Assembly (NCBI RefSeq): GCF_039654945.1
Contig: NW_027361727.1
Span: 22,630,001 to 22,694,000 of the forward strand
Length of the DNA: 64,000 bases
Source of the DNA: Dendrobates tinctorius
Taxonomy: Eukaryota
Direction: 5' to 3'
Part shown: piece after piece, positions 161 through 64,000 of the stretch
How the letters are laid out: each line of letters starts with the position of its first letter
Position numbering within the stretch: the stretch's first letter is position 1
Position numbers and translations under genes: made by a program
The notes under the pieces: generated by a model
Seen by the model: the letters and a program-made list of their open reading frames with translations, nothing else
What the model was told of the DNA's origin: nothing
The model's database searches: none

Positions 161-367
161 GATTCTATGAAAGATCAGTAATCAGCGACTGTGGTCGTGA
201 TGCCACTGGTGTTCGCTGATTGTTATGTCATGTGAGTGCTACAGCCACTATCATGAGAGCACTGGGAGGGCCTGCACCAACATTGGGGTGAATATAATTT
301 TTTTTTATTTTTCTTCAGGGGCTTCAGCAGTTAAGAAAGGTGTTGTCCAAGTAATGGACAATATCTT

Positions 368-785
368 TGTAACGGGTCTTCCAAGCTGGGGTACCTCTTT
401 CAGTACCACCCCGTGTTTTCTGAGGTCCGCTCTGCGTTGGCTGGAGTCTGAATGAATGACGCTGGCTGGAATTCCTCTGAGTGCATGGACGCATATAAAA
501 GATCACTGCTTCTCCACGTATTTCCAGTCTGACAACACTTTACTCACAGGACACAGAATATATATCACACAGATACAGAGGGCAGGCCAATAGACAAGCG
601 TCAGGCCAGACATGCATTACAAAAGCCGCAGGTGGCCGGAGCCTGCGGATGTTTACTGTGGGAATTACAAAGGTGGGGGGAGGGCGGACACTGCTGATAC
701 ATTAGGGACATGCATCTCACTTTGAACCTATTATATATACATATAACTGCACAACATATTCTGGGTGCTGAGTGGTTCTGTAACA
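368..785 (-). repeat. LTR 1 (outer 3' LTR, 418 bp)
   Basis: TGTAAC...GTAACA; adjacent polypurine tract on the minus strand (GAAAAGGGGGAGCCG, 786-800). Confidence 0.93.
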
Positions 786-861
786 CGGCTCCCCCTTTTC
801 AGCGACGCGATCGGCATACACAGTCTGATCCTCAACGGATCGGTTTGGGGATGACCGAAGT

Positions 862-3800
862 TTATGGGGTTGGTACAAGTTCCGTTTGTCGACTTAGTCC
901 ATCGGCGTTACCGTTTTGTTTGCCGGGTCTGTAGTGGATGGTGAAGTCCAGAGGTTGTAGGGCTAAACTCCACCGCAGCAATCTGGCGTTGTCTCCGGAG
1001 ACCCAATTAAGCCAGACTAGGGGATTATGGTCCGTTAGGAGGGAAAACTGTCGTCCATACAAATATGGTTGCAACTTCTTGAGTGCCCATACTACCGCCA
1101 GGCACTCCTTCTCGATGGCCGCATAGCCTACTTCACGGGGCAGTAGTTTCCGACTCAGGTAAGCTACCGGGTGTTCTTGGCCGTCCGGCCCGACTTGGCT
1201 CAGTACTGCCCCCAATCCAAACATAGAAGCGTCTGTGTGAACAAGGAAACGTTTAGTTGGATCGGGTGCGGCCAATACAGGGGTATTGGTGAGGGCGTCC
1301 TTTAGTTGGCGGAAGGCTTCCTCACACTCTGAGGTCCAGGTTACCTGGCAGGGTTGGTTCTTACGGGTCAGATCAGTGAGGGGCTTGGCTACGCTGCTGT
1401 AATTGGGAACGAATTTCCTGTAATATCCCGCTGTCCCTAGAAACGCCATGACCTGGGTTTTAGTGCGTGGGATGGGCCATTTGGCTATGGCCTCAATCTT
1501 GGCTGGTTCTGGTCGCTGTTTCTCACTTCCCACCCAATGCCCTAAATACTGAACCTCTGCTTTGCCCACGTGACACTTGTTTGGGTTCAGGGTGATTCCG
1601 GCCTGGTGGATCCTGTCCAATACTGTCTCTAGGTGATTTAGATGCTCTTCCTATGTCGCACTGTAGATGGCGATATCGTCCAGGTAGGCACAAGCATAGT
1701 CCTGGAGACCATCCAGAAGCCCGGTCAGCCAGCCTTTGGAAGGTCGCCGGGGCATTCTTCATCCCGAATGGCATAACTCGAAACTGGAATAAGCCGAACG
1801 GGGTGACAAATGCCGACTTGGGAATAGCGTCAGGACCAAGGGGAATCTGCCAGTAGCCTTTGCATAGATCGATGGTGGTCAAATACTTTGCCCCCACCAG
1901 CCGGTCTAACAACTCATCCACACGCTGCATGGGATATGCATCCGTCACTGTTTTCTCATTGAGCTTACGATAGTCTACACAAAACCGTGTAGTCCCATCC
2001 TTCTTGGGCACTAACACTACGGGGAATCCCCAGGGACTATCTGACTCTTCAATGACCCCTAAACGCAGCATCTCTTGAATCTCTTGTCGCATCCCCTCTC
2101 GTACAGACTCAGGGACGCGGAAGGGGTTTTGTCGCAGGGGGGTCTGATCCTGGGTCTCAACCTTGTGTTGTGCCAGGCGAGTGTACCCCGGTCTCTCTGA
2201 AAACATCCTCTGTCGCAGCCTCAACAACGCCTCCGCCTGCTGTCTCTCCCGGGGGCCTAGGTCTTCGCCCAAGTGTACCTGGTCCCATGTTTTAGACTGA
2301 GTCCTTTCCCCTAAGACATCCGGCAAGGGAAGTCCGGCTAAATCCTCTGCTTCAGGTGCACAGATGGCCACTATCTCTTCAGGGAGCTCCCGGTAGGGCT
2401 TCAGCTTATTCACGTGGAACATGCGGATAACCCTGGGGTCATTACAATCGGCGACATTATAGGTTGTGTCGGCTATTTTCCCCACTACCTGGTAGGGCCC
2501 CTGCCATGCAGCTTGAAACTTATTCTGCTTAGTAGGCTCTAACACCAGGACCTTCTGTCCTATTTCCAAAGTGCGCTCTCTGGTCCTCCGATCGTACCAT
2601 AAGCGCTGGCGCCGCTGTGTCGCCTGCAGGTTCTCACGTACAACCTGGGTCAGCTCCTGTAGGCGGTCCCGGAATTCCAGCACATAGGGTACAATAGGTA
2701 CCCCTTCTATGAGGCCCTCCCCTTCCCAGTGTTCCAGCACTAAGTCTAGGGGTCCCCTTACCCGTCTCCCGTATACCAGCTCGAACGGGGAGAACCCCGT
2801 GGATTCTTGGGGCACCTCCCGATAGGCAAACAGGAGGTGTGGCAAGAATTTCTCCCAGTCCCTGTAGGTCCTGGTAAAAGTCCCAATGAGCTGTTTTAAT
2901 GTCCCGTTAAAGCGTTCACACAACCCATTGGTTTGCGGGTGGTATGGGGCGCTTCTAATGGACTTTACGCCGCACAGCTTCCACAGTTGGTGGGTCACCT
3001 CTGCTGTAAACTGGGTACCCTGGTCCGAGATAATCTCCCGGGGAAATCCAACCCGTGAAAAAACCTGGAGCAGGGCGGCCGCCACCGTCTCTTCCAGTAT
3101 GTTAGGTAACGCAACCGCCTCTGGATACCGTGTGGCATAATCTACCACTGTCAGTATCTACTTTTTCCCGGACGGACTGGGTTTGGCTAACGGCCCTATC
3201 AGATCGACCGCTACTCGGCTAAATGGTTCCTCCACAATGGGGAGGGGGCGTAATCTGGCCTTGCATCGATCCCCCCTCTTGCCAATGCGCTGACAACTGT
3301 GACAGGTCTGGCAGCACTGACTAACTTCATATGTTACCCCCGGCCAAAAGAAGTTTTGGGTCAGACGATGCCTGGTGCGACTGACGCCGAAGTGCCCGGC
3401 CAAGGGTATATCATGAGAGATTCGCAGTAACTCCTGCCTATACTTCTTGGGAATTACCAGCTGTTGTTTTATAGTGGGGCTCGTCCCTGTGTGGTGCTGC
3501 TCTGTGATCCGGTAGAGGAGTCCCTGCTTCCATACAAACTGTTCCCCTTCCATTACCCCTCTCCCCTCCTGTGCCTTCCCACGATATCCCTCTAATGAAG
3601 GATCCTCAAGTAACTCCCTCTTAAATTCATCTGGGGTGGCCCAAGAAATGTGTCTGGCTATGGGAATACGTGTAGGGCTGGAATGTCTTACCTGGGCCTC
3701 TGAGTGTGATTCCACCTCCGCAGCTCGAGCTTGTCTCCGGGTGGTCACAGGATATGTCTCAGCCAGAGGGGCCACCGAGAATGCAGACAACATGGGCCCC

Positions 3801-5344
3801 AAGTCATTTCCCAGCAAGACGTCTGCAGGCAAATCCTCCATCAAGCCGACCTCAACAAGGCCATCCCCGACTCCCCAGTTCAGGTGAATCCTGGCAGTGG
3901 GTAGTCGATGTATGGCTCCCCCTGCTACACGGACTGCCACTGTCCGGTCCGTCTTCTCTTGGTCCCGGACGAGATGAGGCTTCACAAGGGTCAAAGTTGC
4001 CCCGGAATCTCTTAGTCCCTGCATACGTTTCCCATTAACCCACACGACTTGTCGATGCTGTTGTCGATTATCTGCCCGGGCTGCCTGCACGGGGTCTACT
4101 TCATGCAGCACTTCCTCCATCTCTTCCACCCCTTGATTAATCGTAGCCACCAATGCCGGGTCAGCTTCACCTTGGTAGCAGTGTACAGCAGCCCGGCTGA
4201 AGGTAGCTGTTCCCGCCTTTGGCCACTGGGTATGCTGAGTCCGGTTGGGGCATTGTCTTTGCAGGTGGCCCAGCTGACGACAGGTGTGGCATCGTGCCCC
4301 AGGGGGACTGTTGTAGGCCGGGTTTCTAGCTGGTCCCCCTACAATCTTCGGTGGTTTGGGGCCCTCCAGGTTCATGGGCGGGCCCCTAGGGACCACCTTT
4401 GATCCGGACAACTGCGGCCTCCTGGCATCATGATGTTCATCGGCCAGACGAGCGGCTTCCTCAAGAGTCGTTGGCCGCCTGTCCCGAAGCCATTCCTGTG
4501 TCTCGGGGTTTAGTCCATTAAAGAATCGTTCTAACAGGAAGAGCTGGAGGACGTCCTCCTTAGTGGTTGCTTGGCTCCCTTGTACCCACTGTAGCAGTGA
4601 CCGCCGTAATTTACAGGCCCGTTCAGCGTGGGTATCGGTTACGCGTTTTATAAGTCCATGGAACTTTTGGCGGTAGGCCTCTGGTGTCAGCGCATATAGG
4701 GCCAAGATCACTTCTTTGATCTGCTCATAGTCCATACAGTCCTCATCAGGTACCATGCGATAGGCGTCCGCTGCCCGGCCTGTCAGCTTGCTGGCCAGAA
4801 TCTGAACCCGTTCCTCCGGCTTTACTTGATGAAGAGCACACTGCCGCTCAAAGTCCTGCAGAAAGCCATCAATGTCTTCCTCTGCCTCCCCCAACTGTCG
4901 GAAGGCATTGTACTGGATCTTTTTGTGGCTTACTGTTGAAGGTACCTGATCGAAGGCCAGAGCTCCCCCTGCTCGCTGACTCTCCTCTCTCCGCTCTGCC
5001 ATCTCCATCTTGGCCAGCTCCACTTTGGTCCGCTCTGCCATCTCCATCTTGGCTAGCTCTATCCTGGTCCGCTCGGCCATCTTTTCCTTCAGATCAGTAC
5101 GCACATCAGCCATTACCTCTCGTATGATCTCCACTGCAGGGTTTGGGCCATGGAACGCCAGTCTGTTCTTTACCTCCCTCTGGAATTCGGTCTCCTCCAC
5201 ATTCACATTGGGGGGCGCTGCATTGTCGTGTTCCATGATGGCTGCTATCAAATCCGCTTTTGTTTTGTTGCTGGCGATCAACCCTCGGGCTTCCACCAGG
5301 TCTTTTAATGTAGTCCTCTTTAACTTCTGGTAATTATTTTCCAT
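862..5344 (-). pseudogene. gag-pol of Gmr1-like copy 1 (SAP-like N-terminus, SCAN-like capsid, CCHC knuckle, protease, integrase, RT, RNase H), disrupted
   Basis: CHTCRQLGHLQRQC; LRDSGA; HDIPLAGH...CQTCHSC; ISDQGTQF and NGLCERFN; YLDD at 1686-1675; TDAS, KECLA and TDH. TAG at 3158-3160, +1 frameshift near 1721, TAG at 1651-1653. Confidence 0.93.
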
Positions 5345-5375
5345 TCATTCCTTTCCTCCTGTAGAAGGGGTATCA

Positions 5376-5395
5376 AATCCCGCTGGCTGCCACCA
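5376..5395 (-). promoter_or_regulatory. Primer-binding site, tRNA-Leu-like (also at 10405-10424 and 15435-15454)
   Basis: Minus strand reads TGGTGGCAGCCAGCGGGATT one base after the LTR. The first 10 nt match the complement of a tRNA-Leu 3' end (TGGTGGCAGCGGTGGGAT); the rest is imperfect. Confidence 0.65.
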
Positions 5396-5396
5396 G

Positions 5397-5815
5397 TGTA
5401 ACGGGGTCTTCCAAGCTGGGGTACCTCTTTCAGTACCACCCCGTGTTTTCTGAGGTCCGCTCTGCGTTGGCTGGAGTCTGAATGAATGACGCTGGCTGGA
5501 ATTCCTCTGAGTGCATGGACGCATATAAAAGATCACTGCTTCTCCACGTATTTCCAGTCTGACAACACTTTACTCACAGGACACAGAATATATATCACAC
5601 AGATACAGAGGGCAGGCCAATAGACAAGCGTCAGGCCAGACATGCATTACAAAAGCCGCAGGTGGCCGGAGCCTGCGGATGTTTACTGTGGGAATTACAA
5701 AGGTGGGGGGAGGGCGGACACTGCTGATACATTAGGGACATGCATCTCACTTTGAACCTATTATATATACATATAACTGCACAACATATTCTGGGTGCTG
5801 AGTGGTTCTGTAACA
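5397..5815 (-). repeat. LTR 2 (shared internal LTR, 419 bp)
   Basis: PBS on one side and PPT on the other; identical to LTR 1 except one extra G near the left end. Confidence 0.93.
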
Positions 5816-5891
5816 CGGCTCCCCCTTTTCAGCGACGCGATCGGCATACACAGTCTGATCCTCAACGGATCGGTTTGGGGATGACCGAAGT

Positions 5892-8800
5892 TTATGGGGT
5901 TGGTACAAGTTCCGTTTGTCGACTTAGTCCATCGGCGTTACCGGTTTGTTTGCCGGGTCTGTAGTGGATGGTGAAGTCCAGAGGTTGTAGGGCTAAACTC
6001 CACCGCAGCAATCTGGCGTTGTCTCCGGAGACCCAATTAAGCCAGACTAGGGGATTATGGTCCGTTAGGAGGGAAAACTGTCGTCCATACAAATATGGTT
6101 GCAACTTCTTGAGTGCCCATACTACCGCCAGGCACTCCTTCTCGATGGCCGCATAGCCTACTTCACGGGGCAGTAGTTTCCGACTCAGGTAAGCTACCGG
6201 GTGTTCTTGGCCGTCCGGCCCGACTTGGCTCAGTACTGTCCCCAATCCAAACATAGAAGCGTCTGTGTGAACAAGGAAACGTTTAGTTGGATCGGGTGCG
6301 GCCAATACAGGGGTATTGGTGAGGGCGTCCTTTAGTTGGCGGAAGGCTTCCTCACACTCTGAGGTCCAGGTTACCTGGCAGGGTTGGTTCTTACGGGTCA
6401 GATCAGTGAGGGGCTTGGCTACGCTGCTGTAATTGGGAACGAATTTCCTGTAATATCCCGCTGTCCCTAGAAACGCCATGACCTGGGTTTTAGTGCGTGG
6501 TATGGGCCATTTGGCTATGGCCTCAATCTTGGCTGGTTCTGGTCGCTGTTTCTCACTTCCCACCCAATGCCCTAAATACTGAACCTCTGCTTTGCCCACG
6601 TGACACTTGTTTGGGTTCAGGGTGATTCCGGCCTGGTGGATCCTGTCCAATACTGTCTCTAGGTGATTTAGATGCTCTTCCTATGTCGCACTGTAGATGG
6701 CGATATCGTCCAGGTAGGCACAAGCATAGTCCTGGAGACCATCCAGAAGCCTGGTCAGCCAGCCTTTGGAAGGTCGCCGGGGCATTCTTCATCCCGAATG
6801 GCATAACTCGAAACTGGAATAAGCCGAACGGGGTGACAAATGCCGACTTGGGAATAGCGTCAGGACCAAGGGGAATCTGCCAGTAGCCTTTGCATAGATC
6901 GATGGTGGTCAAATACTTTGCCCCCACCAGCCGGTCTAACAACTCATCCACACGCTGCATGGGATATGCATCCGTCACTGTTTTCTCATTGAGCTTACGA
7001 TAGTCTACACAAAACCGTGTAGTCCCATCCTTCTTGGGCACTAACACTACGGGGAATCCCCAGGGACTATCTGACTCTTCAATGACCCCTAAACGCAGCA
7101 TCTCTTGAATCTCTTGTCGCATCCCCTCTCGTACAGACTCAGGGACGCGGAAGGGGTTTTGTCGCAGGGGGGTCTGATCCTGGGTCTCAACCTTGTGTTG
7201 TGCCAGGCGAGTGTACCCCGGTCTCTCTGAAAACATCCTCTGTCGCAGCCTCAACAACGCCTCCGCCTGCTGTCTCTCCCGGGGGCCTAGGTCTTCGCCC
7301 AAGTGTACCTGGTCCCATGTTTTAGACTGAGTCCTTTCCCCTAAGACATCCGGCAAGGGAAGTCCGGCTAAATCCTCTGCTTCAGGTGCACAGATGGCCA
7401 CTATCTCTTCAGGGAGCTCCCGGTAGGGCTTCAGCTTATTCACGTGGAACATGCGGATAACCCTGGGGTCATTACAATCGGCGACATTATAGGTTGTGTC
7501 GGCTATTTTCCCCACTACCTGGTAGGGCCCCTGCCATGCAGCTTGAAACTTATTCTGCTTAGTAGGCGCTAACACCAGGACCTTCTGTCCTATTTCCAAA
7601 GTGCGCTCTCTGGTCCTCCGATCGTACCATAAGCGCTGGCGCCGCTGTGTCGCCTGCAGGTTCTCACGTACAACCTGGGTCAGCTCCTGTAGGCGGTCCC
7701 GGAATTCCAGCACATAGGGTACAATAGGTACCCCTTCTATGAGGCCCTCCCCTTCCCAGTGTTCCAGCACTAAGTCTAGGGGTCCCCTTACCCGTCTCCC
7801 GTATACCAGCTCGAACGGGGAGAACCCCGTGGATTCTTGGGGCACCTCCCGATAGGCAAACAGGAGGTGTGGCAAGAATTTCTCCCAGTCCCTGTAGGTC
7901 CTGGTAAAAGTCCCAATGAGCTGTTTTAATGTCCCGTTAAAGCGTTCACACAACCCATTGGTTTGCGGGTGGTATGGGGCGCTTCTAATGGACTTTACGC
8001 CGCACAGCTTCCACAGTTGGTGGGTCACCTCTGCTGTAAACTGGGTACCCTGGTCCGAGATAATCTCCCGGGGAAATCCAACCCGTGAAAAAACCTGGAG
8101 CAGGGCGGCCGCCACCGTCTCTTCCAGTATGTTAGGTAACGCAACCGCCTCTGGATACCGTGTGGCATAATCTACCACTGTCAGTATCTACTTTTTCCCG
8201 GACGGACTGGGTTTGGCTAACGGCCCTATCAGATCGACCGCTACTCGGCTAAATGGTTCCTCCACAATGGGGAGGGGCGTAATCTGGCCTTGCATCGATC
8301 CCCCCTCTTGCCAATGCGCTGACAACTGTGACAGGTCTGGCAGCACTGACTAACTTCATATGTTACCCCCGGCCAAAAGAAGTTTTGGGTCAGACGATGC
8401 CTGGTGCGACTGACGCCGAAGTGCCCGGCCAAGGGTATATCATGAGAGATTCGCAGTAACTCCTGCCTATACTTCTTGGGAATTACCAGCTGTTGTTTTA
8501 TAGTGGGGCTCGTCCCTGTGTGGTGCTGCTCTGTGATCCGGTAGAGGAGTCCCTGCTTCCATACAAACTGTTCCCCTTCCATTACCCCTCTCCCCTCCTG
8601 TGCCTTCCCACGATATCCCTCTAATGAAGGATCCTCAAGTAACTCCCTCTTAAATTCATCTGGGGTGGCCCAAGAAATGTGTCTGGCTATGGGAATACGT
8701 GTAGGGCTGGAATGTCTTACCTGGGCCTCTGAGTGTGATTCCACCTCCGCAGCTCGAGCTTGTCTCCGGGTGGTCACAGGATATGTCTCAGCCAGAGGGG

Positions 8801-10373
8801 CCACCGAGAATGCAGACAACATGGGCCCCAAGTCATTTCCCAGCAAGACGTCTGCAGGCAAATCCTCCATCAAGCCGACCTCAACAAGGCCATCCCCGAC
8901 TCCCCAGTTCAGGTGAATCCTGGCAGTGGGTAGTCGATGTATGGCTCCCCCTGCTACACGGACTGCCACTGTCCGGTCCGTCTTCTCTTGGTCCCGGACG
9001 AGATGAGGCTTCACAAGGGTCAAAGTTGCCCCGGAATCTCTTAGTCCCTGCATACGTTTCCCATTAACCCACACGACTTGTCGATGCTGTTGTCGATTAT
9101 CTGCCCGGGCTGCCTGCACGGGGTCTACTTCATGCAGCACTTCCTCCATCTCTTCCACCCCTTGATTAATCGTAGCCACCAATGCCGGGTCAGCTTCACC
9201 TTGGTAGCAGTGTACAGCAGCCCGGCTGAAGGTAGCTGTTCCCGCCTTTGGCCACTGGGTATGCTGAGTCCGGTTGGGGCATTGTCTTTGCAGGTGGCCC
9301 AGCTGACGACAGGTGTGGCATCGTGCCCCAGGGGGACTGTTGTAGGCCGGGTTTCTAGCTGGTCCCCCTACAATCTTCGGTGGTTTGGGGCCCTCCAGGT
9401 TCATGGGCGGGCCCCTAGGGACCACCTTTGATCCGGACAACTGCGGCCTCCTGGCATCATGATGTTCATCGGCCAGACGAGCGGCTTCCTCAAGAGTCGT
9501 TGGCCGCCTGTCCCGAAGCCATTCCTGTGTCTCGGGGTTTAGTCCATTAAAGAATCGTTCTAACAGGAAGAGCTGGAGGACGTCCTCCTTAGTGGTTGCT
9601 TGGCTCCCTTGTACCCACTGTAGCAGTGACCGCCGTAATTTACAGGCCCGTTCAGCGTGGGTATCGGTTACGCGTTTTATAAGTCCATGGAACTTTTGGC
9701 GGTAGGCCTCTGGTGTCAGCGCATATAGGGCCAAGATCACTTCTTTGATCTGCTCATAGTCCATACAGTCCTCATCAGGTACCATGCGATAGGCGTCCGC
9801 TGCCCGGCCTGTCAGCTTGCTGGCCAGAATCTGAACCCGTTCCTCCGGCTTTACTTGATGAAGAGCACACTGCCGCTCAAAGTCCTGCAGAAAGCCATCA
9901 ATGTCTTCCTCTGCCTCCCCCAACTGTCGGAAGGCATTGTACTGGATCTTTTTGTGGCTTACTGTTGAAGGTACCTGATCGAAGGCCAGAGCTCCCCCTG
10001 CTCGCTGACTCTCCTCTCTCCGCTCTGCCATCTCCATCTTGGCCAGCTCCACTTTGGTCCGCTCTGCCATCTCCATCTTGGCTAGCTCTATCCTGGTCCG
10101 CTCGGCCATCTTTTCCTTCAGATCAGTACGCACATCAGCCATTACCTCTCGTATGATCTCCACTGCAGGGTTTGGGCCATGGAACGCCAGTCTGTTCTTT
10201 ACCTCCCTCTGGAATTCGGTCTCCTCCACATTCACATTGGGGGGCGCTGCATTGTCGTGTTCCATGATGGCTGCTATCAAATCCGCTTTTGTTTTGTTGC
10301 TGGCGATCAACCCTCGGGCTTCCACCAGGTCTTTTAATGTAGTCCTCTTTAACTTCTGGTAATTATTTTCCAT
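5892..10373 (-). pseudogene. gag-pol of Gmr1-like copy 2, disrupted
   Basis: Same three lesions as copy 1 (TAG 8188-8190, frameshift near 6751, TAG 6681-6683), plus a 1-bp loss in a G run near 8274. Confidence 0.93.
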
Positions 10374-10425
10374 TCATTCCTTTCCTCCTGTAGAAGGGGT
10401 ATCAAATCCCGCTGGCTGCCACCAG

Positions 10426-10844
10426 TGTAACGGGGTCTTCCAAGCTGGGGTACCTCTTTCAGTACCACCCCGTGTTTTCTGAGGTCCGCTCTGCGTTGGC
10501 TGGAGTCTGAATGAATGACGCTGGCTGGAATTCCTCTGAGTGCATGGACGCATATAAAAGATCACTGCTTCTCCACGTATTTCCAGTCTGACAACACTTT
10601 ACTCACAGGACACAGAATATATATCACACAGATACAGAGGGCAGGCCAATAGACAAGCGTCAGGCCAGACATGCATTACAAAAGCCGCAGGTGGCCGGAG
10701 CCTGCGGATGTTTACTGTGGGAATTACAAAGGTGGGGGGAGGGCGGACACTGCTGATACATTAGGGACATGCATCTCACTTTGAACCTATTATATATACA
10801 TATAACTGCACAACATATTCTGGGTGCTGAGTGGTTCTGTAACA
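10426..10844 (-). repeat. LTR 3 (shared internal LTR, 419 bp)
   Basis: No difference from LTR 2 found by eye. Confidence 0.93.
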
Positions 10845-10920
10845 CGGCTCCCCCTTTTCAGCGACGCGATCGGCATACACAGTCTGATCCTCAACGGATC
10901 GGTTTGGGGATGACCGAAGT

Positions 10921-13900
10921 TTATGGGGTTGGTACAAGTTCCGTTTGTCGACTTAGTCCATCGGCGTTACCGGTTTGTTTGCCGGGTCTGTAGTGGATGG
11001 TGAAGTCCAGAGGTTGTAGGGCTAAACTCCACCGCAGCAATCTGGCGTTGTCTCCGGAGACCCAATTAAGCCAGACTAGGGGATTATGGTCCGTTAGGAG
11101 GGAAAACTGTCGTCCATACAAATATGGTTGCAACTTCTTGAGTGCCCATACTACCGCCAGGCACTCCTTCTCGATGGCCGCATAGCCTACTTCACGGGGC
11201 AGTAGTTTCCGACTCAGGTAAGCTACCGGGTGTTCTTGGCCGTCCGGCCCGACTTGGCTCAGTACTGCCCCCAATCCAAACATAGAAGCGTCTGTGTGAA
11301 CAAGGAAACGTTTAGTTGGATCGGGTGCGGCCAATACAGGGGTATTGGTGAGGGCGTCCTTTAGTTGGCGGAAGGCTTCCTCACACTCTGAGGTCCAGGT
11401 TACCTGGCAGGGTTGGTTCTTACGGGTCAGATCAGTGAGGGGCTTGGCTACGCTGCTGTAATTGGGAACGAATTTCCTGTAATATCCCGCTGTCCCTAGA
11501 AACGCCATGACCTGGGTTTTAGTGCGTGGTATGGGCCATTTGGCTATGGCCTCAATCTTGGCTGGTTCTGGTCGCTGTTTCTCACTTCCCACCCAATGCC
11601 CTAAATACTGAACCTCTGCTTTGCCCACGTGACACTTGTTTGGGTTCAGGGTGATTCCGGCCTGGTGGATCCTGTCCAATACTGTCTCTAGGTGATTTAG
11701 ATGCTCTTCCTATGTCGCACTGTAGATGGCGATATCGTCCAGGTAGGCACAAGCATAGTCCTGGAGACCATCCAGAAGCCTGGTCAGCCAGCCTTTGGAA
11801 GGTCGCCGGGGCATTCTTCATCCCGAATGGCATAACTCGAAACTGGAATAAGCCGAACGGGGTGACAAATGCCGACTTGGGAATAGCGTCAGGACCAAGG
11901 GGAATCTGCCAGTAGCCTTTGCATAGATCGATGGTGGTCAAATACTTTGCCCCCACCAGCCGGTCTAACAACTCATCCACACGCTGCATGGGATATGCAT
12001 CCGTCACTGTTTTCTCATTGAGCTTACGATAGTCTACACAAAACCGTGTAGTCCCATCCTTCTTGGGCACTAACACTACGGGGAATCCCCAGGGACTATC
12101 TGACTCTTCAATGACCCCTAAACGCAGCATCTCTTGAATCTCTTGTCGCATCCCCTCTCGTACAGACTCAGGGACGCGGAAGGGGTTTTGTCGCAGGGGG
12201 GTCTGATCCTGGGTCTCAACCTTGTGTTGTGCCAGGCGAGTGTACCCCGGTCTCTCTGAAAACATCCTCTGTCGCAGCCTCAACAACGCCTCCGCCTGCT
12301 GTCTCTCCCGGGGGCCTAGGTCTTCGCCCAAGTGTACCTGGTCCCATGTTTTAGACTGAGTCCTTTCCCCTAAGACATCCGGCAAGGGAAGTCCGGCTAA
12401 ATCCTCTGCTTCAGGTGCACAGATGGCCACTATCTCTTCAGGGAGCTCCCGGTAGGGCTTCAGCTTATTCACGTGGAACATGCGGATAACCCTGGGGTCA
12501 TTACAATCGGCGACATTATAGGTTGTGTCGGCTATTTTCCCCACTACCTGGTAGGGCCCCTGCCATGCAGCTTGAAACTTATTCTGCTTAGTAGGCGCTA
12601 ACACCAGGACCTTCTGTCCTATTTCCAAAGTGCGCTCTCTGGTCCTCCGATCGTACCATAAGCGCTGGCGCCGCTGTGTCGCCTGCAGGTTCTCACGTAC
12701 AACCTGGGTCAGCTCCTGTAGGCGGTCCCGGAATTCCAGCACATAGGGTACAATAGGTACCCCTTCTATGAGGCCCTCCCCTTCCCAGTGTTCCAGCACT
12801 AAGTCTAGGGGTCCCCTTACCCGTCTCCCGTATACCAGCTCGAACGGGGAGAACCCCGTGGATTCTTGGGGCACCTCCCGATAGGCAAACAGGAGGTGTG
12901 GCAAGAATTTCTCCCAGTCCCTGTAGGTCCTGGTAAAAGTCCCAATGAGCTGTTTTAATGTCCCGTTAAAGCGTTCACACAACCCATTGGTTTGCGGGTG
13001 GTATGGGGCGCTTCTAATGGACTTTACGCCGCACAGCTTCCACAGTTGGTGGGTCACCTCTGCTGTAAACTGGGTACCCTGGTCCGAGATAATCTCCCGG
13101 GGAAATCCAACCCGTGAAAAAACCTGGAGCAGGGCGGCCGCCACCGTCTCTTCCAGTATGTTAGGTAACGCAACCGCCTCTGGATACCGTGTGGCATAAT
13201 CTACCACTGTCAGTATCTACTTTTTCCCGGACGGACTGGGTTTGGCTAACGGCCCTATCAGATCGACCGCTACTCGGCTAAATGGTTCCTCCACAATGGG
13301 GAGGGGGCGTAATCTGGCCTTGCATCGATCCCCCCTCTTGCCAATGCGCTGACAACTGTGACAGGTCTGGCAGCACTGACTAACTTCATATGTTACCCCC
13401 GGCCAAAAGAAGTTTTGGGTCAGACGATGCCTGGTGCGACTGACGCCGAAGTGCCCGGCCAAGGGTATATCATGAGAGATTCGCAGTAACTCCTGCCTAT
13501 ACTTCTTGGGAATTACCAGCTGTTGTTTTATAGTGGGGCTCGTCCCTGTGTGGTGCTGCTCTGTGATCCGGTAGAGGAGTCCCTGCTTCCATACAAACTG
13601 TTCCCCTTCCATTACCCCTCTCCCCTCCTGTGCCTTCCCACGATATCCCTCTAATGAAGGATCCTCAAGTAACTCCCTCTTAAATTCATCTGGGGTGGCC
13701 CAAGAAATGTGTCTGGCTATGGGAATACGTGTAGGGCTGGAATGTCTTACCTGGGCCTCTGAGTGTGATTCCACCTCCGCAGCTCGAGCTTGTCTCCGGG
13801 TGGTCACAGGATATGTCTCAGCCAGAGGGGCCACCGAGAATGCAGACAACATGGGCCCCAAGTCATTTCCCAGCAAGACGTCTGCAGGCAAATCCTCCAT

Positions 13901-15403
13901 CAAGCCGACCTCAACAAGGCCATCCCCGACTCCCCAGTTCAGGTGAATCCTGGCAGTGGGTAGTCGATGTATGGCTCCCCCTGCTACACGGACTGCCACT
14001 GTCCGGTCCGTCTTCTCTTGGTCCCGGACGAGATGAGGCTTCACAAGGGTCAAAGTTGCCCCGGAATCTCTTAGTCCCTGCATACGTTTCCCATTAACCC
14101 ACACGACTTGTCGATGCTGTTGTCGATTATCTGCCCGGGCTGCCTGCACGGGGTCTACTTCATGCAGCACTTCCTCCATCTCTTCCACCCCTTGATTAAT
14201 CGTAGCCACCAATGCCGGGTCAGCTTCACCTTGGTAGCAGTGTACAGCAGCCCGGCTGAAGGTAGCTGTTCCCGCCTTTGGCCACTGGGTATGCTGAGTC
14301 CGGTTGGGGCATTGTCTTTGCAGGTGGCCCAGCTGACGACAGGTGTGGCATCGTGCCCCAGGGGGACTGTTGTAGGCCGGGTTTCTAGCTGGTCCCCCTA
14401 CAATCTTCGGTGGTTTGGGGCCCTCCAGGTTCATGGGCGGGCCCCTAGGGACCACCTTTGATCCGGACAACTGCGGCCTCCTGGCATCATGATGTTCATC
14501 GGCCAGACGAGCGGCTTCCTCAAGAGTCGTTGGCCGCCTGTCCCGAAGCCATTCCTGTGTCTCGGGGTTTAGTCCATTAAAGAATCGTTCTAACAGGAAG
14601 AGCTGGAGGACGTCCTCCTTAGTGGTTGCTTGGCTCCCTTGTACCCACTGTAGCAGTGACCGCCGTAATTTACAGGCCCGTTCAGCGTGGGTATCGGTTA
14701 CGCGTTTTATAAGTCCATGGAACTTTTGGCGGTAGGCCTCTGGTGTCAGCGCATATAGGGCCAAGATCACTTCTTTGATCTGCTCATAGTCCATACAGTC
14801 CTCATCAGGTACCATGCGATAGGCGTCCGCTGCCCGGCCTGTCAGCTTGCTGGCCAGAATCTGAACCCGTTCCTCCGGCTTTACTTGATGAAGAGCACAC
14901 TGCCGCTCAAAGTCCTGCAGAAAGCCATCAATGTCTTCCTCTGCCTCCCCCAACTGTCGGAAGGCATTGTACTGGATCTTTTTGTGGCTTACTGTTGAAG
15001 GTACCTGATCGAAGGCCAGAGCTCCCCCTGCTCGCTGACTCTCCTCTCTCCGCTCTGCCATCTCCATCTTGGCCAGCTCCACTTTGGTCCGCTCTGCCAT
15101 CTCCATCTTGGCTAGCTCTATCCTGGTCCGCTCGGCCATCTTTTCCTTCAGATCAGTACGCACATCAGCCATTACCTCTCGTATGATCTCCACTGCAGGG
15201 TTTGGGCCATGGAACGCCAGTCTGTTCTTTACCTCCCTCTGGAATTCGGTCTCCTCCACATTCACATTGGGGGGCGCTGCATTGTCGTGTTCCATGATGG
15301 CTGCTATCAAATCCGCTTTTGTTTTGTTGCTGGCGATCAACCCTCGGGCTTCCACCAGGTCTTTTAATGTAGTCCTCTTTAACTTCTGGTAATTATTTTC
15401 CAT
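10921..15403 (-). pseudogene. gag-pol of Gmr1-like copy 3, disrupted
   Basis: Same lesions (TAG 13217-13219, frameshift near 11780, TAG 11710-11712). Confidence 0.93.
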
Positions 15404-15455
15404 TCATTCCTTTCCTCCTGTAGAAGGGGTATCAAATCCCGCTGGCTGCCACCAG

Positions 15456-15874
15456 TGTAACGGGGTCTTCCAAGCTGGGGTACCTCTTTCAGTACCATCC
15501 CGTGTTTTCGGAGGTCCGCTCTGCGTTGGCTGGAGTCTGAATGAATGACGCTGGCTGGAATTCCTCTGAGTGCATGGGCACATTTAAAAGATCACTGCTT
15601 CTCCACATATTTCCAGTCTGACAACACTTTACTCAGAGGACACAGAATATATATCACACAGATACAGAGGGCCGGCCAATAGACAAGCGTCAGGCCAGAC
15701 ATGCATTACAAAAGCAGCAGGTGGCCGGAGCCTGCGTATGTTTACTGTGGGAATTACAAAGGTAGGGGGAGGGTGGACACTGCTGATACATTAGGGACAT
15801 GCATCTCACATGGAACCTATTATATATACATATAACTGCACAACATATTCTGGGTGCTGAGTGGTTCGGTAACA
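15456..15874 (-). repeat. LTR 4 (outer 5' LTR, 419 bp)
   Basis: About 15 substitutions relative to LTRs 1-3; followed by the TSD ATCTT. Confidence 0.93.
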
Positions 15875-16528
15875 ATCTTTAAACGAACATACATGATTAA
15901 TGAATAAAAGATGACTTTTTGCATCCCGGGGGGGTCTAGAACAGTGGAGGGGTTAATATCTGTATCCCTTCTTCTAAAGGGTTAGTCTACAAATAAAGAA
16001 CATAGTTGCTTTTTAAAGAGTTAATCTGCAAGAGAAGGAAAACAGTTGCCACCATAATGAAGAGAAGACTTACAGGTTTAACCTCTGCAGTGGCACCTGC
16101 TGTTTCAAAATACACAGGAACCCTTCTTTCTTCGTACATAGCTACATCCAGCATGAAGTAAGACTGTAGCATAGACCATCCACAAGGTCCGACGCAACGT
16201 ACTCTTTTATTCCTTCTGAAATATTTCCCATTTCAAGAGCAGGAAGGCTCCCACATCTTTCAAAATTGTGAGACAGTGGAGAGCCCCAACTTTCGTCTTT
16301 TTTTGTCTCCCTTTCTGATATATATATAATTGAGAGGTTTTATATATTGGTTTCTTTATATTTCATGGAGGCAAGAGGTCCTCTTTAGGATAGCTCAGGG
16401 AGACCGTGAAACTTGTAAGAAATAGTGGTGGAAGCAAATAACCCACGATCTATCCTCCAGTTAGTAAAGTTTAGCACAAGTAACCTTCTTACTGCCTAAT
16501 TTGAAGCAATGACACTTCTGTCCTTCAG

Positions 16529-16716
16529 ATACGTGGTGATATCTCGAGAAGAACGGGAGCAAAACCTCATGGCATTTCAGCACAGCGAGAAGATTTATTT
16601 CCGTGCGTGTCGTGACATTCATCCCGGAGAGAAGCTGCGGGTTTGGTACAGCGACGATTACATGAAAAGGCTGCATAGCATGTCTCAGGAGACAATCATT
16701 CGCAACCTCAGCAGAG
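16529..16716 (+). CDS. PRDM11: PRDM11 internal exon, C-terminal part of the PR/SET domain
   Basis: ttcag| acceptor and |gtaaga donor; [56 protein letters not shown] matches PRDM11 as I remember it; phase-1 end joins 20092 in frame. Confidence 0.92.
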
Positions 16717-19187: not shown

Positions 19188-19965
19188 TTCTAGTTGGGAG
19201 ATCCAAAGCATTGATCCAAATGTAGGCCTAGACCTATTGAGCGGGGTTATCAGAACCCTAGACCTATTGAGCGGGGTTATCAGAACTTAGGTAACCAATG
19301 TTCTAGTTGGGAGGTCCTAAGCATTGATCCAAATGTAGGCCTAGACCTATTGAGCGGGGTTATCAGAACCTAGGTAACCAATGTTCTAGTTGGAAGTTCC
19401 AAAGCATTGATCCAAATGTAGGCCTAGACCTCTTGAGCGGGGTTATCAGAACTTAGGTAACCAATGTTCTAGTTGGGAGTTCCAAAGCATTGATCCAAAT
19501 GTAGGCCTAGACCTATTGAGCGGGGTTATCAGAACCTAGGTAACCAATGTTCTAGTTGGGAGTTCCAAAGCATTGATCCAAATGTAGGCCTAGACCTCTT
19601 GAGCGGGGTTATCAGAACTTAGGTAACCAATGTTCTAGTTGGGAGTTCCAAAGCATTGATCCAAATGTAGGCCTAGACCTATTGAGCGGGGTTATCAGAA
19701 CCTAGGTAACCAATGTTCTAGTTGGGAGTTCCAAAGCATTGATCCAAATGTAGGCCTAGACCTCTTGAGCGGGGTTATCAGAACTTAGGTAACGAATGTT
19801 CTAGTTGGAAGGTCCTAAGCATTGATCCAAATGTAGGCCTAGACCTATTGAGCTGGGTTATCAGAACTTAGGTAACCAATGTTCTAGTTGGGAGGTCGTA
19901 ACCATTGATCCAAATGTAGGCCTAGACCTAATCCAGAGGGGTTATCCTAATTTAGATAACCAATG
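19188..19965. repeat. 83-bp minisatellite, about 9 units
   Basis: TTCTAGTTGGGAG...GGTAACCAATG starts at 19188, 19301, 19384, 19467, 19550, 19633, 19716, 19799 and about 19881. Confidence 0.92.
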
Positions 19966-20091
19966 TAATATGACACAATGGGTATTACCAAAGAATAATG
20001 GCCATCTTCTACTGAGGAAAGCTTAAAAAATGTAAGGCTTTAATAAGGGAACATGTGGCTATATGATAACACACCTAATTTTCCTTTCCAG

Positions 20092-42979: not shown

Positions 42980-44985
42980 CAGGATGTAACTCAGAATCAG
43001 TACTGGATCAGTAATGTAATGTATGTACACAGTGAGTGCACCAGCAGAATAGTGAGTGCAGCTCTGGAGTATAATACAGGATGTAAATCAGGATCAGTAA
43101 TGTAATGTATGTACACAGTGACTGCACCAGCAGAATAGTGAGTGCAGCTCTGGAGTATAATACAGGATGTAAATCAGGATCAGTAATGTAATGTATGTAC
43201 ACAGTGACTGCACCAGCAGAATAGTGAGTGCAGCTCTGGGGTATAATACAGGATGTAACTCAGGATCAGTAATGTAATGTGTGTACACAGTGACTGCACC
43301 AGCAGAATAGTGAGTGCAGCTCTGGAGTATAATACAGGATATAACTCAGAATCAGTAATGTATGTACACAGTGACTCCACCAGCAGAATAGTGAGTGCAG
43401 CTCTGGGGTATAATACAGGATGTAAATCAGTATCAGTAATGTAATGTATGTACACAGTGACTGCACCAGCAGAATAGTGAGTGCTGCGTTGGGGTATAAT
43501 ACAGGATGTAACTCAGGATCAGTAATGTAATGTATGTACACAGTGACTGCACCAGCAGAATAGTGAGTGCAGCTCTGGAGTATAATACAGGATGTAACTC
43601 ATGATCAGTAATGTATGTACACAGTGACTGCACCAGCAGAATAGTGAGTGTAGCTCTGGGGTATAATACAGGATGTAACTCAGGATCAGTAATGTAATGT
43701 ATGTACACAGTGACTGCACCAGCAGAATAGTGAGTGCAGCTCTGGAGTATAATACAGGATATAACTCAGAATCAGTAATGTATGTACACAGTGACTGCAC
43801 CAGCAGAATAGTGAGTGCAGCTCTGGGGTATAATACAGGATGTAACTCAGGATCAGTAATGTAATGTATGTACACAGTGACTGCACCAGCAGAATAGTGA
43901 GTGCAGCTCTGGAGTATAATACAGGATATAACTCAGAATCAGTAATGTAATGTATGTACACAGTGACTGCACCAGCAGAATAGTGAGTGCAGCTCTGGAG
44001 TATAATACAGGATGTAACTCAGAATCAGTAATGTAATGTATGTACACAGTGACTGCACCAGCAGAATAGTGAGTGCAGCTCTGGAGTAAAATACAGGATA
44101 TACAGTAACTCAGAATCAGTAATGTAATGTATGTACACAGTGACTGCACCAGCAGAATAGTGAGTGCAGCTCTGGAGTATAATACAGGATATAACTCAGA
44201 ATTAGTAATGTATGTACACAGTGACTGCACCAGCAGAATAGTGAGTGCAGCTCTGGGGTATAATACAGGATGTAACTCAGGATCAGTAATGTAATGTATG
44301 TACACAGTGACTGCACCAGCAGAATAGTGAGTGCAGCTCTGGAGTATAATACAGGATATAACTCAGAATCAGTAATGTAATGTATGTACACAGTGACTGC
44401 ACCAGCAGAATAGTGAGTGCAGCTCTGGAGTATAATACAGGATGTAACTCAGAATCAGTAATGTAATGTATGTACACAGTGACTGCACCAGCAGAATAGT
44501 GAGTGCAGCTCTGGAGTAAAATACAGGATATACAGTAACTCAGAATCAGTAATGTAATGTATGTACACAGTGACTGCACCAGCAGAATAGTGAGTGCAGC
44601 TCTGGAGTATAATACAGGATATAACTCAGAATCAGTAATGTAATGTATGTACACAGTGACTGCACCAGCAGAATAGTGAGTGCAGCTCTGGGGTATAATA
44701 CAGGATGTAACTCAGAATCAGTAATGTAATGTATGTACACAGTGACTGCACCAGCAGAATAGTGAGTGCAGCTCTGGAGTATAATACAGGATGTAACTCA
44801 GGATCAGTAATGTAATGTATGTACACAGTGACTGCACCAGCAGAATAGTGAGTGCAGCTCTGGGGTATAATACAGGATGTAACTCAGGGTCAGTAATATA
44901 ATGTATGTACACAGTGACTGCACCGGCAGAATAGTGAGTGCAGCTCTGGGATATAATAGTGTGTGTAGCTCAGAATCAGTAATAA
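42980..44985 (-). repeat. 86-bp minisatellite, about 23 units, reverse complement of the 32040 array
   Basis: Same unit on the opposite strand, with 81-bp and 91-bp variants. Confidence 0.93.
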
Positions 44986-45909
44986 TGTATTTGTGCTCTG
45001 TATGTATATAGTGTTTGGTGAGCTTAGGCTTTGACAGAGTAGCGATGTTGATGTGTTATGTTCCCAGTGATTTCTCCCCTCTTGCGGGTTGTGTGTTCCT
45101 CTAGTCTAGGACCTGTACAGCATTTGTAGTGACTCTGAGTTCCATTATAAATCTGAGCTTCTCTGACCCAGTTTTGACTATTGAATATTAACATTCATAT
45201 CATCGCGTTGCTGTTCCTGGCAGAAATCATGACTTCAGATAAATGATAGATTGGGCTGTAATGAGAGCGCTCGCTTCGTGCACACATTCAGGGCGCAGTC
45301 ATGTTCATGTGTTGTGCCTGGTTTTCTAATGAGTGGCGCTTGCATCATTGTTTCCATGGCAACGCTTTTGTTCTTTTTTTTTTAAAGCAAGTAATCCATT
45401 TTTCATTTCCTCCACAATGTATGTTCCTTTGGGAATTAATGTATCCGTCTTCTATTATGCTCCGCCTCATCTAATGACATAAAAAAACGCTGGTAAGTTT
45501 TGATATCCCAAATTGTAGGGCCTGAGGGGCATGAGCCATTATTCCTACGGGATGCTCCATGTCTTAGGCCCTGGCTACATCTGTTCTACAAACTATCAGT
45601 CATATCTGGATTTTTCTTTAAAAGGAACTATTTTCAATCCATACTTACATATTCTTTAGACCCAGTAAATCAGGATTTTTTTTTATTATCAAGTGGATAC
45701 AATCAGCAAGGAAAATCCTCCTTGCTGATGGAATCCTCTCATTGAAGAAAATGTTGAATTCCTGCCATTTTGGGAGGCGGAAGAAGTGAACATCGACAGA
45801 TCTCTAGTGACCCACTGCACGAGTGCAGAAACCTCAAGATTACAAAGATTGGAGCTGATAACATATAAAATGTATTTGTAGCAGGCTATCATAGCTTGCT
45901 TTTATTTCT

Positions 45910-56368: not shown

Positions 56369-57686
56369 CCGGGATAGGCATCCGCACCGTCGCAGCTACA
56401 GCCACAAAATTTGGCACAGTCACACGTCTGGACCCCGAGAGCGTCCTAAGCTATGTTGTGAGGCGAAATTTTAACCCCGCACATTCCAATTCACCAAACA
56501 ATTTTGCCCCTATCTACATACTGGGGGAAAAAGTGTGTGCACGTCAAGCCCCGCCCCTCATTATGATGTCATAATGTCCCTATTTGCATACTGGGGAAGC
56601 AGTGTGTGCGTATCAAGCCCCGCCCCTCATTATGATGTAACAATGGTTGCCATGGCGAAGCTGATGTCATCATAGGTTGCAAGCCCTGCCGCCGCTCATT
56701 ATGATGTCATAATGGTTGACTATGGAATAGAGGATGTGTGATGGGTATATGGGCACTCAACTATGGGATGGAGGATATGTATGATGGGTATATGGGCACC
56801 AGACTATGGGATAGAGGATATGTATGATGGGTATATGGGAACGGGACTATGGGATGGAGGATGTGTGATGGGTATATGGGCACAGGACTATGGGATGGAG
56901 GATGTGTGATGGGTATATGGGCACAGGACTATGGGATGGAGGATATGTATAATGGGTATATGGGCACGGGACTATGGGATGGAGGATGTGTGATGGGTAT
57001 ATGGGCACGGGACTATGAGATAGCGGATATGTATGATGGGTATATGGGCACGGGACTATGGGATGGAGGATATGTATGATGGGTATATGGGCACGGGACT
57101 ATGAGATGAAGGATGTGTGATGGGTATATGGGCACTCGACTATGGGATGGAGGATATGTATGATGGGTATATGGGCACAGGACTATGAGATGAAGGATGT
57201 GTGATGGGTATATGGGCACTCGACTATGGGATGGTGAATATGTATGATGGGTATATGGGCACGGGACTATGGGATGGAGAATATGTATGATGGGTATATG
57301 GGCATGGGACTATGGGATGGAGAATATGTATGATGGGTATATGGGCACTTGACTATGGGATGGAGGATGTATGATGGGTATATGGGCACGGGACTATGGG
57401 ATGGAGGATATGTATGATGGGTATATGGGCATGGGACTATGAGATGGAGAATATGTATGATGGGTATATGGACATGGGACTATGGGATGGAGGATGTGTG
57501 ATGGGTATATGGGCACTCGACTATGGGATGGAGGATATGTATGATGGGTATATGGGCACGGGCCTATGGGATCGTGGATATGTATGATGGGTATATGGGT
57601 ACGGGACTATGGGATGGAGGATAATTATAATTTTCTATAACCACAGTTAGTTACTATGCCCGGGCAGCGCCGGGCTCTTCAGCTAG
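56265..57686 (+). mobile_element. Non-autonomous Helitron-like element inserted in the YR gene
   Basis: A|TC start, CTAG|T end, hairpin CCCGG..CCGGG near 57659-57674; removing it restores the YR frame (SKY|FSGVSFF). Confidence 0.85.
56718..57622. repeat. 41/43-bp minisatellite inside the Helitron, about 21 units; (TG)n tract near 56290-56365
   Basis: Unit GGACTATGGGATGGAGGAT(AT)GT(A/G)TGATGGGTATATGGGCAC(G/A). Confidence 0.9.
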
Positions 57687-63790: not shown

Positions 63791-64000
63791 CCCGTTGGGA
63801 GGGGGGTACTTTCATGATCTCAGTGCGGGTTTGACTCGCACACATGGGGTTAATGTCTGGAACCAGTCCTGATGACTGGCATTTCTGGGGTTAAAGGTTG
63901 TGATCCCAGTGCAGGCTTACCTGCACACTTGGGGCTTATGATTGTGGCCTCTCCCTGATTCTGGGAAAGGGTTCTTATAGCCTCAGGACGCTCCCATCCC

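Follow-up and report, generated by a model that had tools for sequence, protein, structure and literature searches.

A 64,000-nt stretch of DNA from the poison frog Dendrobates tinctorius, the whole of which is referred to here as the window, carries, as assembled, between positions 368 and 15,874 three head-to-tail copies of one dead LTR retrotransposon, and it is highly probable that an old single insertion was tripled in place by unequal homologous exchange between its LTRs. The original prediction had been that such an insertion was multiplied late, by recombination at the DNA level and with no new retrotransposition. This reading has held up, and it is supported by a single target site duplication (TSD), mosaic inner LTRs, coding lesions common to all units and a total of six differences among the internal regions.

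Results

A repeat search of the window found a period of 5029/5030 bp at the array, in which three internal regions alternate with four LTRs in a single orientation, following the pattern of n internal regions and n+1 LTRs. The element lies on the minus strand, which the earlier description of the locus did not include. Read along the forward strand, the left copy of the TSD (ATCTT, 363..367, from direct reading of the sequence) is followed by LTR1 (368..785, 418 bp, with the ends TGTAAC...GTAACA), which in element orientation is the 3' LTR and is of A type. The internal region of unit 1 (786..5396), LTR2 (5397..5815, 419 bp), the internal region of unit 2 (5816..10425), LTR3 (10426..10844, 419 bp) and the internal region of unit 3 (10845..15455) come next, and the array ends with LTR4 (15456..15874, 419 bp), the 5' LTR in element orientation and of B type, and the right copy of ATCTT (15875..15879). 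All of the LTRs and internal regions are on the minus strand. The 5-bp duplication at 363-367 and 15875-15879 is the sole TSD, and the inner junctions are without one. A polypurine tract, GAAAAGGGGGAG on the minus strand, is located just upstream of the 3' LTR (789..800) and also adjoins LTR2 and LTR3, while a primer-binding-site-like stretch, TGGTGGCAGCCAGCGGG on the minus strand, is found 1 base past the 5' LTR (15438..15454) and is repeated at 5379-5395 and 10408-10424. LTR2 and LTR3 are each shared between neighbouring units and abut the primer-binding site (PBS) and the polypurine tract (PPT) directly, with no extra duplicated or leftover target bases. The element thus has LTR ends of the TG..CA type, a PBS, a PPT and a 5-bp TSD, and the predicted three internal regions, four LTRs and single ATCTT duplication could be given exact boundaries, base for base.

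The window contains no runs of N, and a BLAST comparison of one unit against the window found no further copies of the element. The number of three units is the number present in the assembly; among the Logan contigs of the four runs compared none bridges an LTR, and the sole unique contig consists of the left flank and 30 bases of LTR1. The array forms a 15.5-kb GC-rich block. About 650 bp from it, on the plus strand, is a host exon that codes for the last part of a PR/SET domain (16529..16716; PF21549 PRDM2_PR, E = 1.6e-19), bordered by splice-site-like cag and gtaag. This PRDM exon shows that the array lies within an intron, in antisense orientation relative to the host gene.

The Pfam domains on the minus strand occur in the order SCAN/capsid, zf-CCHC, Asp protease, Integrase_H2C2, rve, SH3_Tf2-1, RVT_1 and RT_RNaseH. 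In unit 1 the coding region is divided over three ORF pieces (5344-3158, 3148-1523 and 1620-862), and it reads gag (SCAN/Ty3-capsid-like, with CCHC), protease (PR), integrase (IN), reverse transcriptase (RT) and RNase H (RH). Integrase is therefore upstream of RT (PR-IN-RT-RH), another addition to the earlier description and the normal order for the family; in a protein search the relatives matched IN-RT as one continuous stretch. Judged by its gypsy-type Pfam domains, its domain order and matches named "Gypsy retrotransposon integrase-like", the element is a Gmr1-like Ty3/gypsy element, and it is env-less. In a word-based protein search with the IN-RT piece, no match exceeded 87% identity and the out-of-frame tail was covered by none, and the protein collection therefore is without close copies of this element family.

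In the genome of this poison frog the family is very abundant. Its comparison was based on Logan contigs from four runs (X1, X13 and X15 among them), with 40 of the 199 variant places listed in the contig variant table. In run X1 the summed word depth, which does not equal copy number, was about 35,000 for the element vs 7.4 for the unique flank contig. The family is present also in runs guessed to be RNA.

The same three lesions had been predicted in every copy, and they were found in all three units at matching positions on the minus strand. The first is an in-frame stop between the zinc-binding domain and the core of the integrase (3158-3160, 8188-8190 and 13217-13219 in units 1, 2 and 3), the second a one-base frame change in RT in the interval from FQRLAD to LLDGLQ..YLDD (1720-1723, 6750-6753 and 11779-11782), and the third an in-frame stop 7 codons past YLDD (1651-1653, 6681-6683 and 11710-11712). 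The reading frame is open at the place of the integrase stop in the relative P0003, and the relative P0001 is open across both the RT frame change and the stop after YLDD. Relatives thus keep an open frame at each of the three places, which shows the lesions to be real breaks. A programmed frameshift or readthrough was considered as their explanation and is rejected on the same ground. The array encodes nothing functional. At the place of the RT frame change, many family contigs show a one-base length difference, and the state seen in the window makes up about half of the family word depth in run X1, which suggests that this lesion was possibly inherited from the source copy. Some of the lesions may thus have been inherited in this way and others may have arisen in place.

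Alignment of the two outer LTRs gave 15 substitutions and one 1-base indel in a G-run (K2P 0.0368), so that the predicted difference of about 15 in 419 positions is correct for substitutions, with the indel in addition. Transversions account for 9 of the 15, a share not typical of plain drift. Between LTR2 and LTR3 there are zero differences. At all 15 substitution sites (alignment columns 43-413) the inner LTRs are of LTR1 type, and LTR4 thus differs from LTR1-3 at every one of them. Only at the indel in column 7, near one end, are they of LTR4 type (GGG in LTR1, GGGG in LTR2-4). The inner LTRs are in this respect chimeric, with the polarity expected when a far-end LTR crosses into the next near-end LTR, the LTR4-like part being one difference in G-run length. 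This would place the exchange at 5404-5438 in LTR2 and 10433-10467 in LTR3. The G-run difference could also have arisen by later mutation or through an error in the consensus, and the exchange interval would then be columns 1-42 and not 8-42.

The internal regions differ at exactly 6 of 4611 columns, 5 by substitution and 1 by a single-base indel, in agreement with the predicted figure of about six. Four of the differences are private to unit 1 (914, 1471, 1722 and 2538). Unit 2 has, besides the three common lesions, two private changes, a substitution at 6239 and a one-base deletion at 8273 that causes an extra frame change in the integrase, while unit 3 has the common lesions and no private differences. 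The substitutions accordingly separate into four of unit 1 and one private to unit 2. At one of these places a CpG is kept in unit 1 (1722) and a TpG is common to units 2 and 3 (6752 and 11781), and this favours (unit 1, (unit 2, unit 3)) as the order. All four private differences of unit 1 fall within the first 1753 of the 4611 columns (chance about 0.02), a clustering that is outside the prediction of a simple exchange model. Two of the copy-specific differences are changes in homopolymer length.

The divergence between units is 0.04-0.13%, vs 3.68% between the outer LTRs. Since the units have diverged less from one another than the outer LTRs have, the amplification is younger than the insertion. 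Compared with the majority of family contigs, the copy differs at 72 of 3993 bases (1.8%) in run X15 and at 64 of 4195 bases (1.5%) in run X13. This divergence of 1.5-1.8%, common to all units, is about half of the K2P distance of 3.68% between the LTRs, as expected if decay preceded the amplification. The amplification therefore postdates nearly all the decay, its age being roughly 2-3% that of the insertion. The departures from the family are mainly A for G and T for C, the pattern characteristic of CpG decay. The original prediction that the insertion decayed first is therefore quantitatively plausible, but it may not extend to the frame change, given its frequency in run X1.

Discussion

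LTR-LTR exchange is the standard published mechanism for tandems with shared LTRs (PMC5932611 Fig. 1A; PMC11899658, discussion), and the events at the present locus can be envisaged as follows. A Gmr1-like Ty3/gypsy element would have integrated a single time into an intron of the PRDM gene, in the minus orientation, and duplicated ATCTT. The single copy would then have aged until its LTRs were 3.7% apart and its coding region contained two stops and one frame change. Much later, the LTR at one element end may have paired with the opposite-end LTR of a misaligned copy, presumably in an unequal homologous exchange between sister chromatids or homologues or in an equivalent homology-directed repair, with an exchange point no further than about 35-42 bp from an LTR end. 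This would first give two units in tandem that share a mosaic LTR, and we infer that a second, out-of-register exchange between two-unit arrays gave three units with identical inner LTRs. If four equal LTRs had drifted independently, the probability of all 15 changes being on one of them would be 0.25^15, or about 1e-9.

It is improbable that the array is an assembly artefact, in which the locus would in reality have one unit, or some other number, and the assembler would have looped through the cycle of LTR, internal region and LTR. The abundance of the family is extreme, as seen from the word depths in run X1 (about 35,000 vs 7.4), and could confuse an assembler; the two differences in homopolymer length are typical of consensus error, and a spanning read is not among the contig data. 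However, a single element with LTRs 3.7% apart gives no exact cycle, and a one-unit locus cannot yield the junction between an internal end and an LTR of LTR1 type. The five substitution differences moreover form a coherent pattern (four in unit 1 and one in unit 2), and the window is without an N gap.

Equally improbable is an old tandem that dates from the insertion or near to it, perhaps formed from a tandem cDNA or transcript of the sort discussed for plants, in which unequal exchange or gene conversion later homogenised everything except the outermost LTR. Such a history would have to homogenise three times 5 kb down to 6 differences and yet stop abruptly within a 42-bp part of one LTR. 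Repeats at the edge of an array do typically escape homogenisation, and LTR4 is here the only divergent one. The clustered private differences of unit 1 could mark the edge of a conversion tract, and a "complex insertion" is left open as an origin of tandems in PMC11899658. On the other hand, the recombination process invoked is the same as in LTR-LTR exchange and more events are required, and a contraction to a single unit with later re-expansion would be indistinguishable from the tripling of a single insertion.

Slightly more doubtful still is an RNA-mediated route independent of integrase, in which proteins of the active family would have acted in trans to reverse-transcribe RNA from the dead locus, and the cDNA, for instance a one-LTR circle, would have entered the parent copy by homologous recombination. 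This route is cited for yeast in PMC11899658, and the family is both abundant and seen in runs guessed to be RNA. The regenerated LTR would combine U3 of the 3' LTR with R-U5 of the 5' LTR, which is the same polarity as in the mosaic, but the switch would then have to fall at the U3/R border and R and U5 together could not exceed 42 nt. The two TATA-like motifs of the LTR (element positions 222 and 288 of 419) point, as a weak argument, to an R-U5 of about 100 nt or more, a stretch that would take in columns 43 and 55, where the mosaic is of 3'-LTR type. If true, this route would make the locus the vertebrate equivalent of the integrase-independent tandems of yeast Ty1, and would mean that reverse transcription of dead copies in trans still goes on.

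Separate insertions of two or three members of the family, at the same site or nested in each other's LTRs, have a negligible probability and are ruled out by the junction sequences, in spite of double insertion being the principal way in which tandem dimers of many Drosophila transposons arise (PMC5932611), since an internal TSD or leftover target sequence is absent, the LTRs are shared and not abutting, and all units have the same lesions and the same approximately 75 departures from the family majority.

With unequal exchange between the LTRs of one old insertion as the preferred origin, the locus provides a clean worked example. Amplification took place in an element that was already old, and its diverged LTRs therefore serve as markers both of the place of exchange and of an amplification after decay. 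In giant, repeat-filled frog genomes, DNA can in this manner be gained from dead elements without retrotransposition; each unequal exchange would here add 5 kb, and the reverse process removes DNA as solo LTRs. The array is most likely a neutral block of intronic DNA that is unstable in copy number. The "macrosatellite" behaviour of the 5-kb unit is a prediction, and the number of units may vary between individuals, which would make the array a possible structural marker.

The element itself can be compared to the Gmr1-like clade of Ty3/gypsy as defined in PMC8220671. The gypsy-type set of RT, RNase H and integrase, with integrase upstream of RT, is found here too, and no differences in architecture were seen in this comparison of domains. 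For Gmr1-like elements about 200 copies have been reported in Silurana (PMC4131045), and the family in Dendrobates tinctorius is far more abundant.

The kind of locus is already known from flies, plants and humans, and the biology is not new in kind. The original prediction that such an array is rarely seen this clearly was overstated, as shared-LTR tandems are reported to be frequent in Drosophila (PMC5932611) and in plants (PMC11899658) and one is found at human HERV-K108 (PMC4149278). In Drosophila most LTR families form shared-LTR tandems, with head-to-tail units and one shared LTR attributed to ectopic or unequal LTR exchange, much as in the frog (PMC5932611). The Drosophila tandems were identified from short-read junctions on a population scale, whereas the frog array is a single locus whose three units are fully resolved in the assembly. 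It lies in an old and defective copy, and its LTR markers locate the exchange point. Morales-Diaz et al. 2025 (PMC11899658) described tandem arrays of LTR retrotransposons in rice and further plants, with alternating LTRs and internal regions and one TSD, with Gypsy elements favoured and the number of units polymorphic. The plant survey could not decide between complex insertion and later recombination, whereas at the frog locus, in a vertebrate host, later recombination is favoured by the divergence of the outer LTRs, by the mosaic make-up of the inner ones and by the common decay. The human HERV-K(HML-2) provirus K108 at 7p22.1 is, according to a table note in PMC4149278, a tandem provirus of two units with a single shared central LTR, and its segregating alleles (provirus, solo-LTR, tandem and empty) correspond to the reciprocal outcomes of LTR-LTR exchange. 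K108 belongs to the endogenous retroviruses and has two units, while the frog array consists of three units of an env-less Gmr1-like gypsy element.

Organisation of the array and of its element

A direct-repeat search gave a 5029/5030-bp period over 368-15874, and BLAST of one unit against the 64-kb window found three full units there and no further copy outside the array. The window has no N runs. Reading of the junctions places three internal regions (786-5396, 5816-10425 and 10845-15455) between LTR1 (368-785, 418 bp) and three LTRs of 419 bp, LTR2 (5397-5815), LTR3 (10426-10844) and LTR4 (15456-15874), all on the minus strand, with TGTAAC...GTAACA as the ends of all four LTRs. The inner pair, LTR2 and LTR3, directly adjoin the polypurine tract and the primer-binding-site-like stretch, and their junctions are without extra duplicated bases; the tract lies at 789-800 (minus strand), and the TGG-initiated stretch begins one base past each 5'-side LTR. 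ATCTT is present at both array edges (363-367 and 15875-15879), so that the original observation of three internal regions, four LTRs and a single TSD is borne out.

The long reading frames of the array are all on the minus strand, which makes LTR4 the 5' LTR and LTR1 the 3' LTR in element orientation. Along this strand the Pfam domains follow in the order SCAN/Ty3-capsid-like gag with CCHC knuckle, aspartic protease, Integrase_H2C2, rve and Tf2-type SH3, RVT_1, and RT-linked RNase H. The element thus shares its domain order with the Gmr1 clade, of which a gypsy-type element with integrase upstream of RT is the hallmark (PMC8220671), and Gmr1-like elements are known from frogs (PMC4131045). 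In a protein search the integrase-to-RT piece was matched continuously in relatives from frogs, fishes, a turtle and a sea cucumber, the best match being from Dendrobates tinctorius (87% identity); a local rearrangement as source of this order is ruled out, since the relatives match the piece as a single stretch. In contrast, a second, unrelated Ty3/gypsy element at 58000-64000 (plus strand) has the canonical order of PR, RNase H, integrase core and SH3; it is broken into ORFs at 59993-60823, 61919-62521, 62638-63297 and 63307-63834, and runs off the window end. The gag N-terminus of each array unit contains a 39-bp repeat of 2.4 copies (4990-5082, 10019-10111 and 15049-15141), a small coding duplication that encodes a repeated MAERT.(I/V)ELAKMEMAER motif.

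The family is very abundant: in the DNA sequencing run X1 the element reached a summed word depth of about 35,000, whereas the unique contig 129-397 had 7.4, although depth is not copy number. Family LTRs adjoin other flanks, seen as loose contig ends, and a related species carries the family at about 3.4% divergence.

An exon on the plus strand (16529-16716), some 650 bp beyond the right edge of the array, encodes the final part of a PR domain (PF21549, E = 1.6e-19), and the array therefore lies antisense in an intron of a PRDM gene. GC content is 52-55% in the array and 39-43% in its flanks. The left flank opens (1-165) with a repeat of very high copy number (about 24,000 in X1 word depth), which resembles the beginning of a gene for a Tc1-type transposase. 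Elsewhere in the window there are an 83-bp tandem repeat at 19257-19966 (8.5 copies, 94% matches) and three satellite-like arrays, at 44000-44990 (86-bp unit, 11.5 copies), at 45941-47747 (31-bp unit, 59 copies, strongly strand-skewed, with GC skew -0.36 and AT skew +0.37) and at 56718-57623 (43/84/127-bp unit, G-rich).

Mosaic inner LTRs and the origin of the tandem

Between LTR1 and LTR4 there are 15 substitutions and a single difference in G-run length (K2P 0.0368), in line with the 15 or so of 419 positions noted originally. LTR2 and LTR3 are identical; at each of the 15 substituted positions, which span alignment columns 43-413, they agree with LTR1, whereas column 7 is as in LTR4. Such a mosaic is what must result when, by unequal exchange, the LTR ending one unit crosses into the LTR starting the next. 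The exchange point would then fall within columns 8-42, corresponding to 5404-5438 in LTR2, the LTR4-like part being a single GGG/GGGG difference; should this reflect a more recent mutation or an error in the consensus, the interval would extend over columns 1-42, and all else stays the same. Had the four LTRs been equal at insertion and drifted independently, the chance of finding all 15 changes on one LTR would be about 1e-9. Transversions account for 9 of the 15 LTR1-LTR4 differences, and G/T transversions are over-represented both among the LTR1-LTR4 differences (4 of 15; columns 55, 282, 357 and 413) and among the unit-to-unit differences (3 of 5; 914, 1471 and 2538).

Recombination of cDNA or of a one-LTR circle into a resident copy predicts a mosaic of the same polarity, but requires R+U5 to be at most 42 nt; the TATA-like motifs of the 419-bp LTR, at 222 and 288 in element orientation, point to a length of some 100 nt or above, which is a weak argument against this route. 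An assembly artefact is unlikely, since a single-unit locus whose LTRs are 3.7% apart gives no cycle to loop through and cannot yield a junction between an internal end and an LTR1-type LTR. An old array held uniform by concerted evolution is hard to square with an exchange boundary inside 42 bp, and would be the same process as LTR-LTR exchange with more events. Independent or nested insertions are contradicted by the junction sequences.

Shared lesions and timing of the amplification

The same three lesions had been noted in all copies, and each was found in all three units on the minus strand: an in-frame stop lying between the zinc-binding domain of integrase and its core domain (3158-3160, 8188-8190 and 13217-13219), a one-base frame change after FQRLAD and before LLDGLQ..YLDD (1720-1723, 6750-6753 and 11779-11782), and an in-frame stop seven codons past YLDD (1651-1653, 6681-6683 and 11710-11712). 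Relatives are open at all three places, so these are real breaks, and programmed recoding is ruled out on the same ground.

Compared with the majority-variant contigs of the family, the copy has 72 differences over 3993 bases in run X15 (1.8%) and 64 over 4195 in run X13 (1.5%); they are mainly A-for-G and T-for-C changes, the pattern typical of CpG decay. These values are close to half the distance between the LTRs, as would be the case had most of the divergence accrued in a single copy after insertion. Since this divergence is common to all three units, the amplification postdates almost all of the decay. About 80 substitutions in 4.6 kb would be likely to yield a few stops, which makes decay in place plausible.

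For one lesion the X1 data are less simple. At the frame-change site the family word depth totals 22,401 units, of which 10,394 are different in length by one base and the remainder has the window's state (the family variant table gives 40 of 199 variant places), while in three smaller runs the lone contig over the site differs from that state. The X1 depth hints that a large subfamily carries the frame change, which would then have been inherited from the source copy. The claim that the insertion "decayed first" is plausible for the divergence of about 1.5-1.8% shared by the units, but perhaps not for the frame change; amplification in place is unaffected.

The internal regions differ at six columns only, in agreement with the roughly 6 positions noted originally. 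Unit 1 is set apart at 914, 1471, 1722 and 2538, unit 2 has private differences at 6239 and 8273, the latter a one-base deletion giving an extra frame change, and unit 3 has none. At 1722 the CpG is kept in unit 1 and units 2 and 3 have TpG in common, which argues for the branching (unit 1, (unit 2, unit 3)) and hence for two successive events. Units 1 and 3 are 4/4611 apart, about 2.4% of the LTR distance, and units 2 and 3 about 0.5-1% of it. With an assumed rate of 1-3e-9 substitutions per site per year, and with very wide counting errors, the insertion would date to about 6-18 million years ago, the first duplication to about 0.15-0.45 million years ago and the second to roughly the last 0.1 million years. 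All four differences that set unit 1 apart fall within internal columns 1-1753 of 4611 (38%; chance about 0.02), possibly by a conversion tract, by exchange between slightly different alleles, or by chance. Overall, the mosaic inner LTRs, the shared lesions and the shared divergence support the late DNA-level multiplication of an old insertion.

Comparison with known shared-LTR tandems

Shared-LTR tandems formed by LTR-LTR exchange are textbook material for satellite origins. They are reported to be frequent in Drosophila (PMC5932611), and common and polymorphic in rice, Arabidopsis, almond and cotton in a study that further cites kangaroo centromeres, TRIM arrays and yeast (PMC11899658), while at human HERV-K108 alleles with a provirus, a solo LTR, a tandem or an empty site segregate (PMC4149278). 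The frog locus is an amphibian case of this already known class. Its sole merit beyond the ordinary is that the age of the element at amplification separates later recombination from complex insertion: the plant study left the choice between the two open (PMC11899658), whereas the frog sequence decides for later recombination, because the element was already old when it was amplified.
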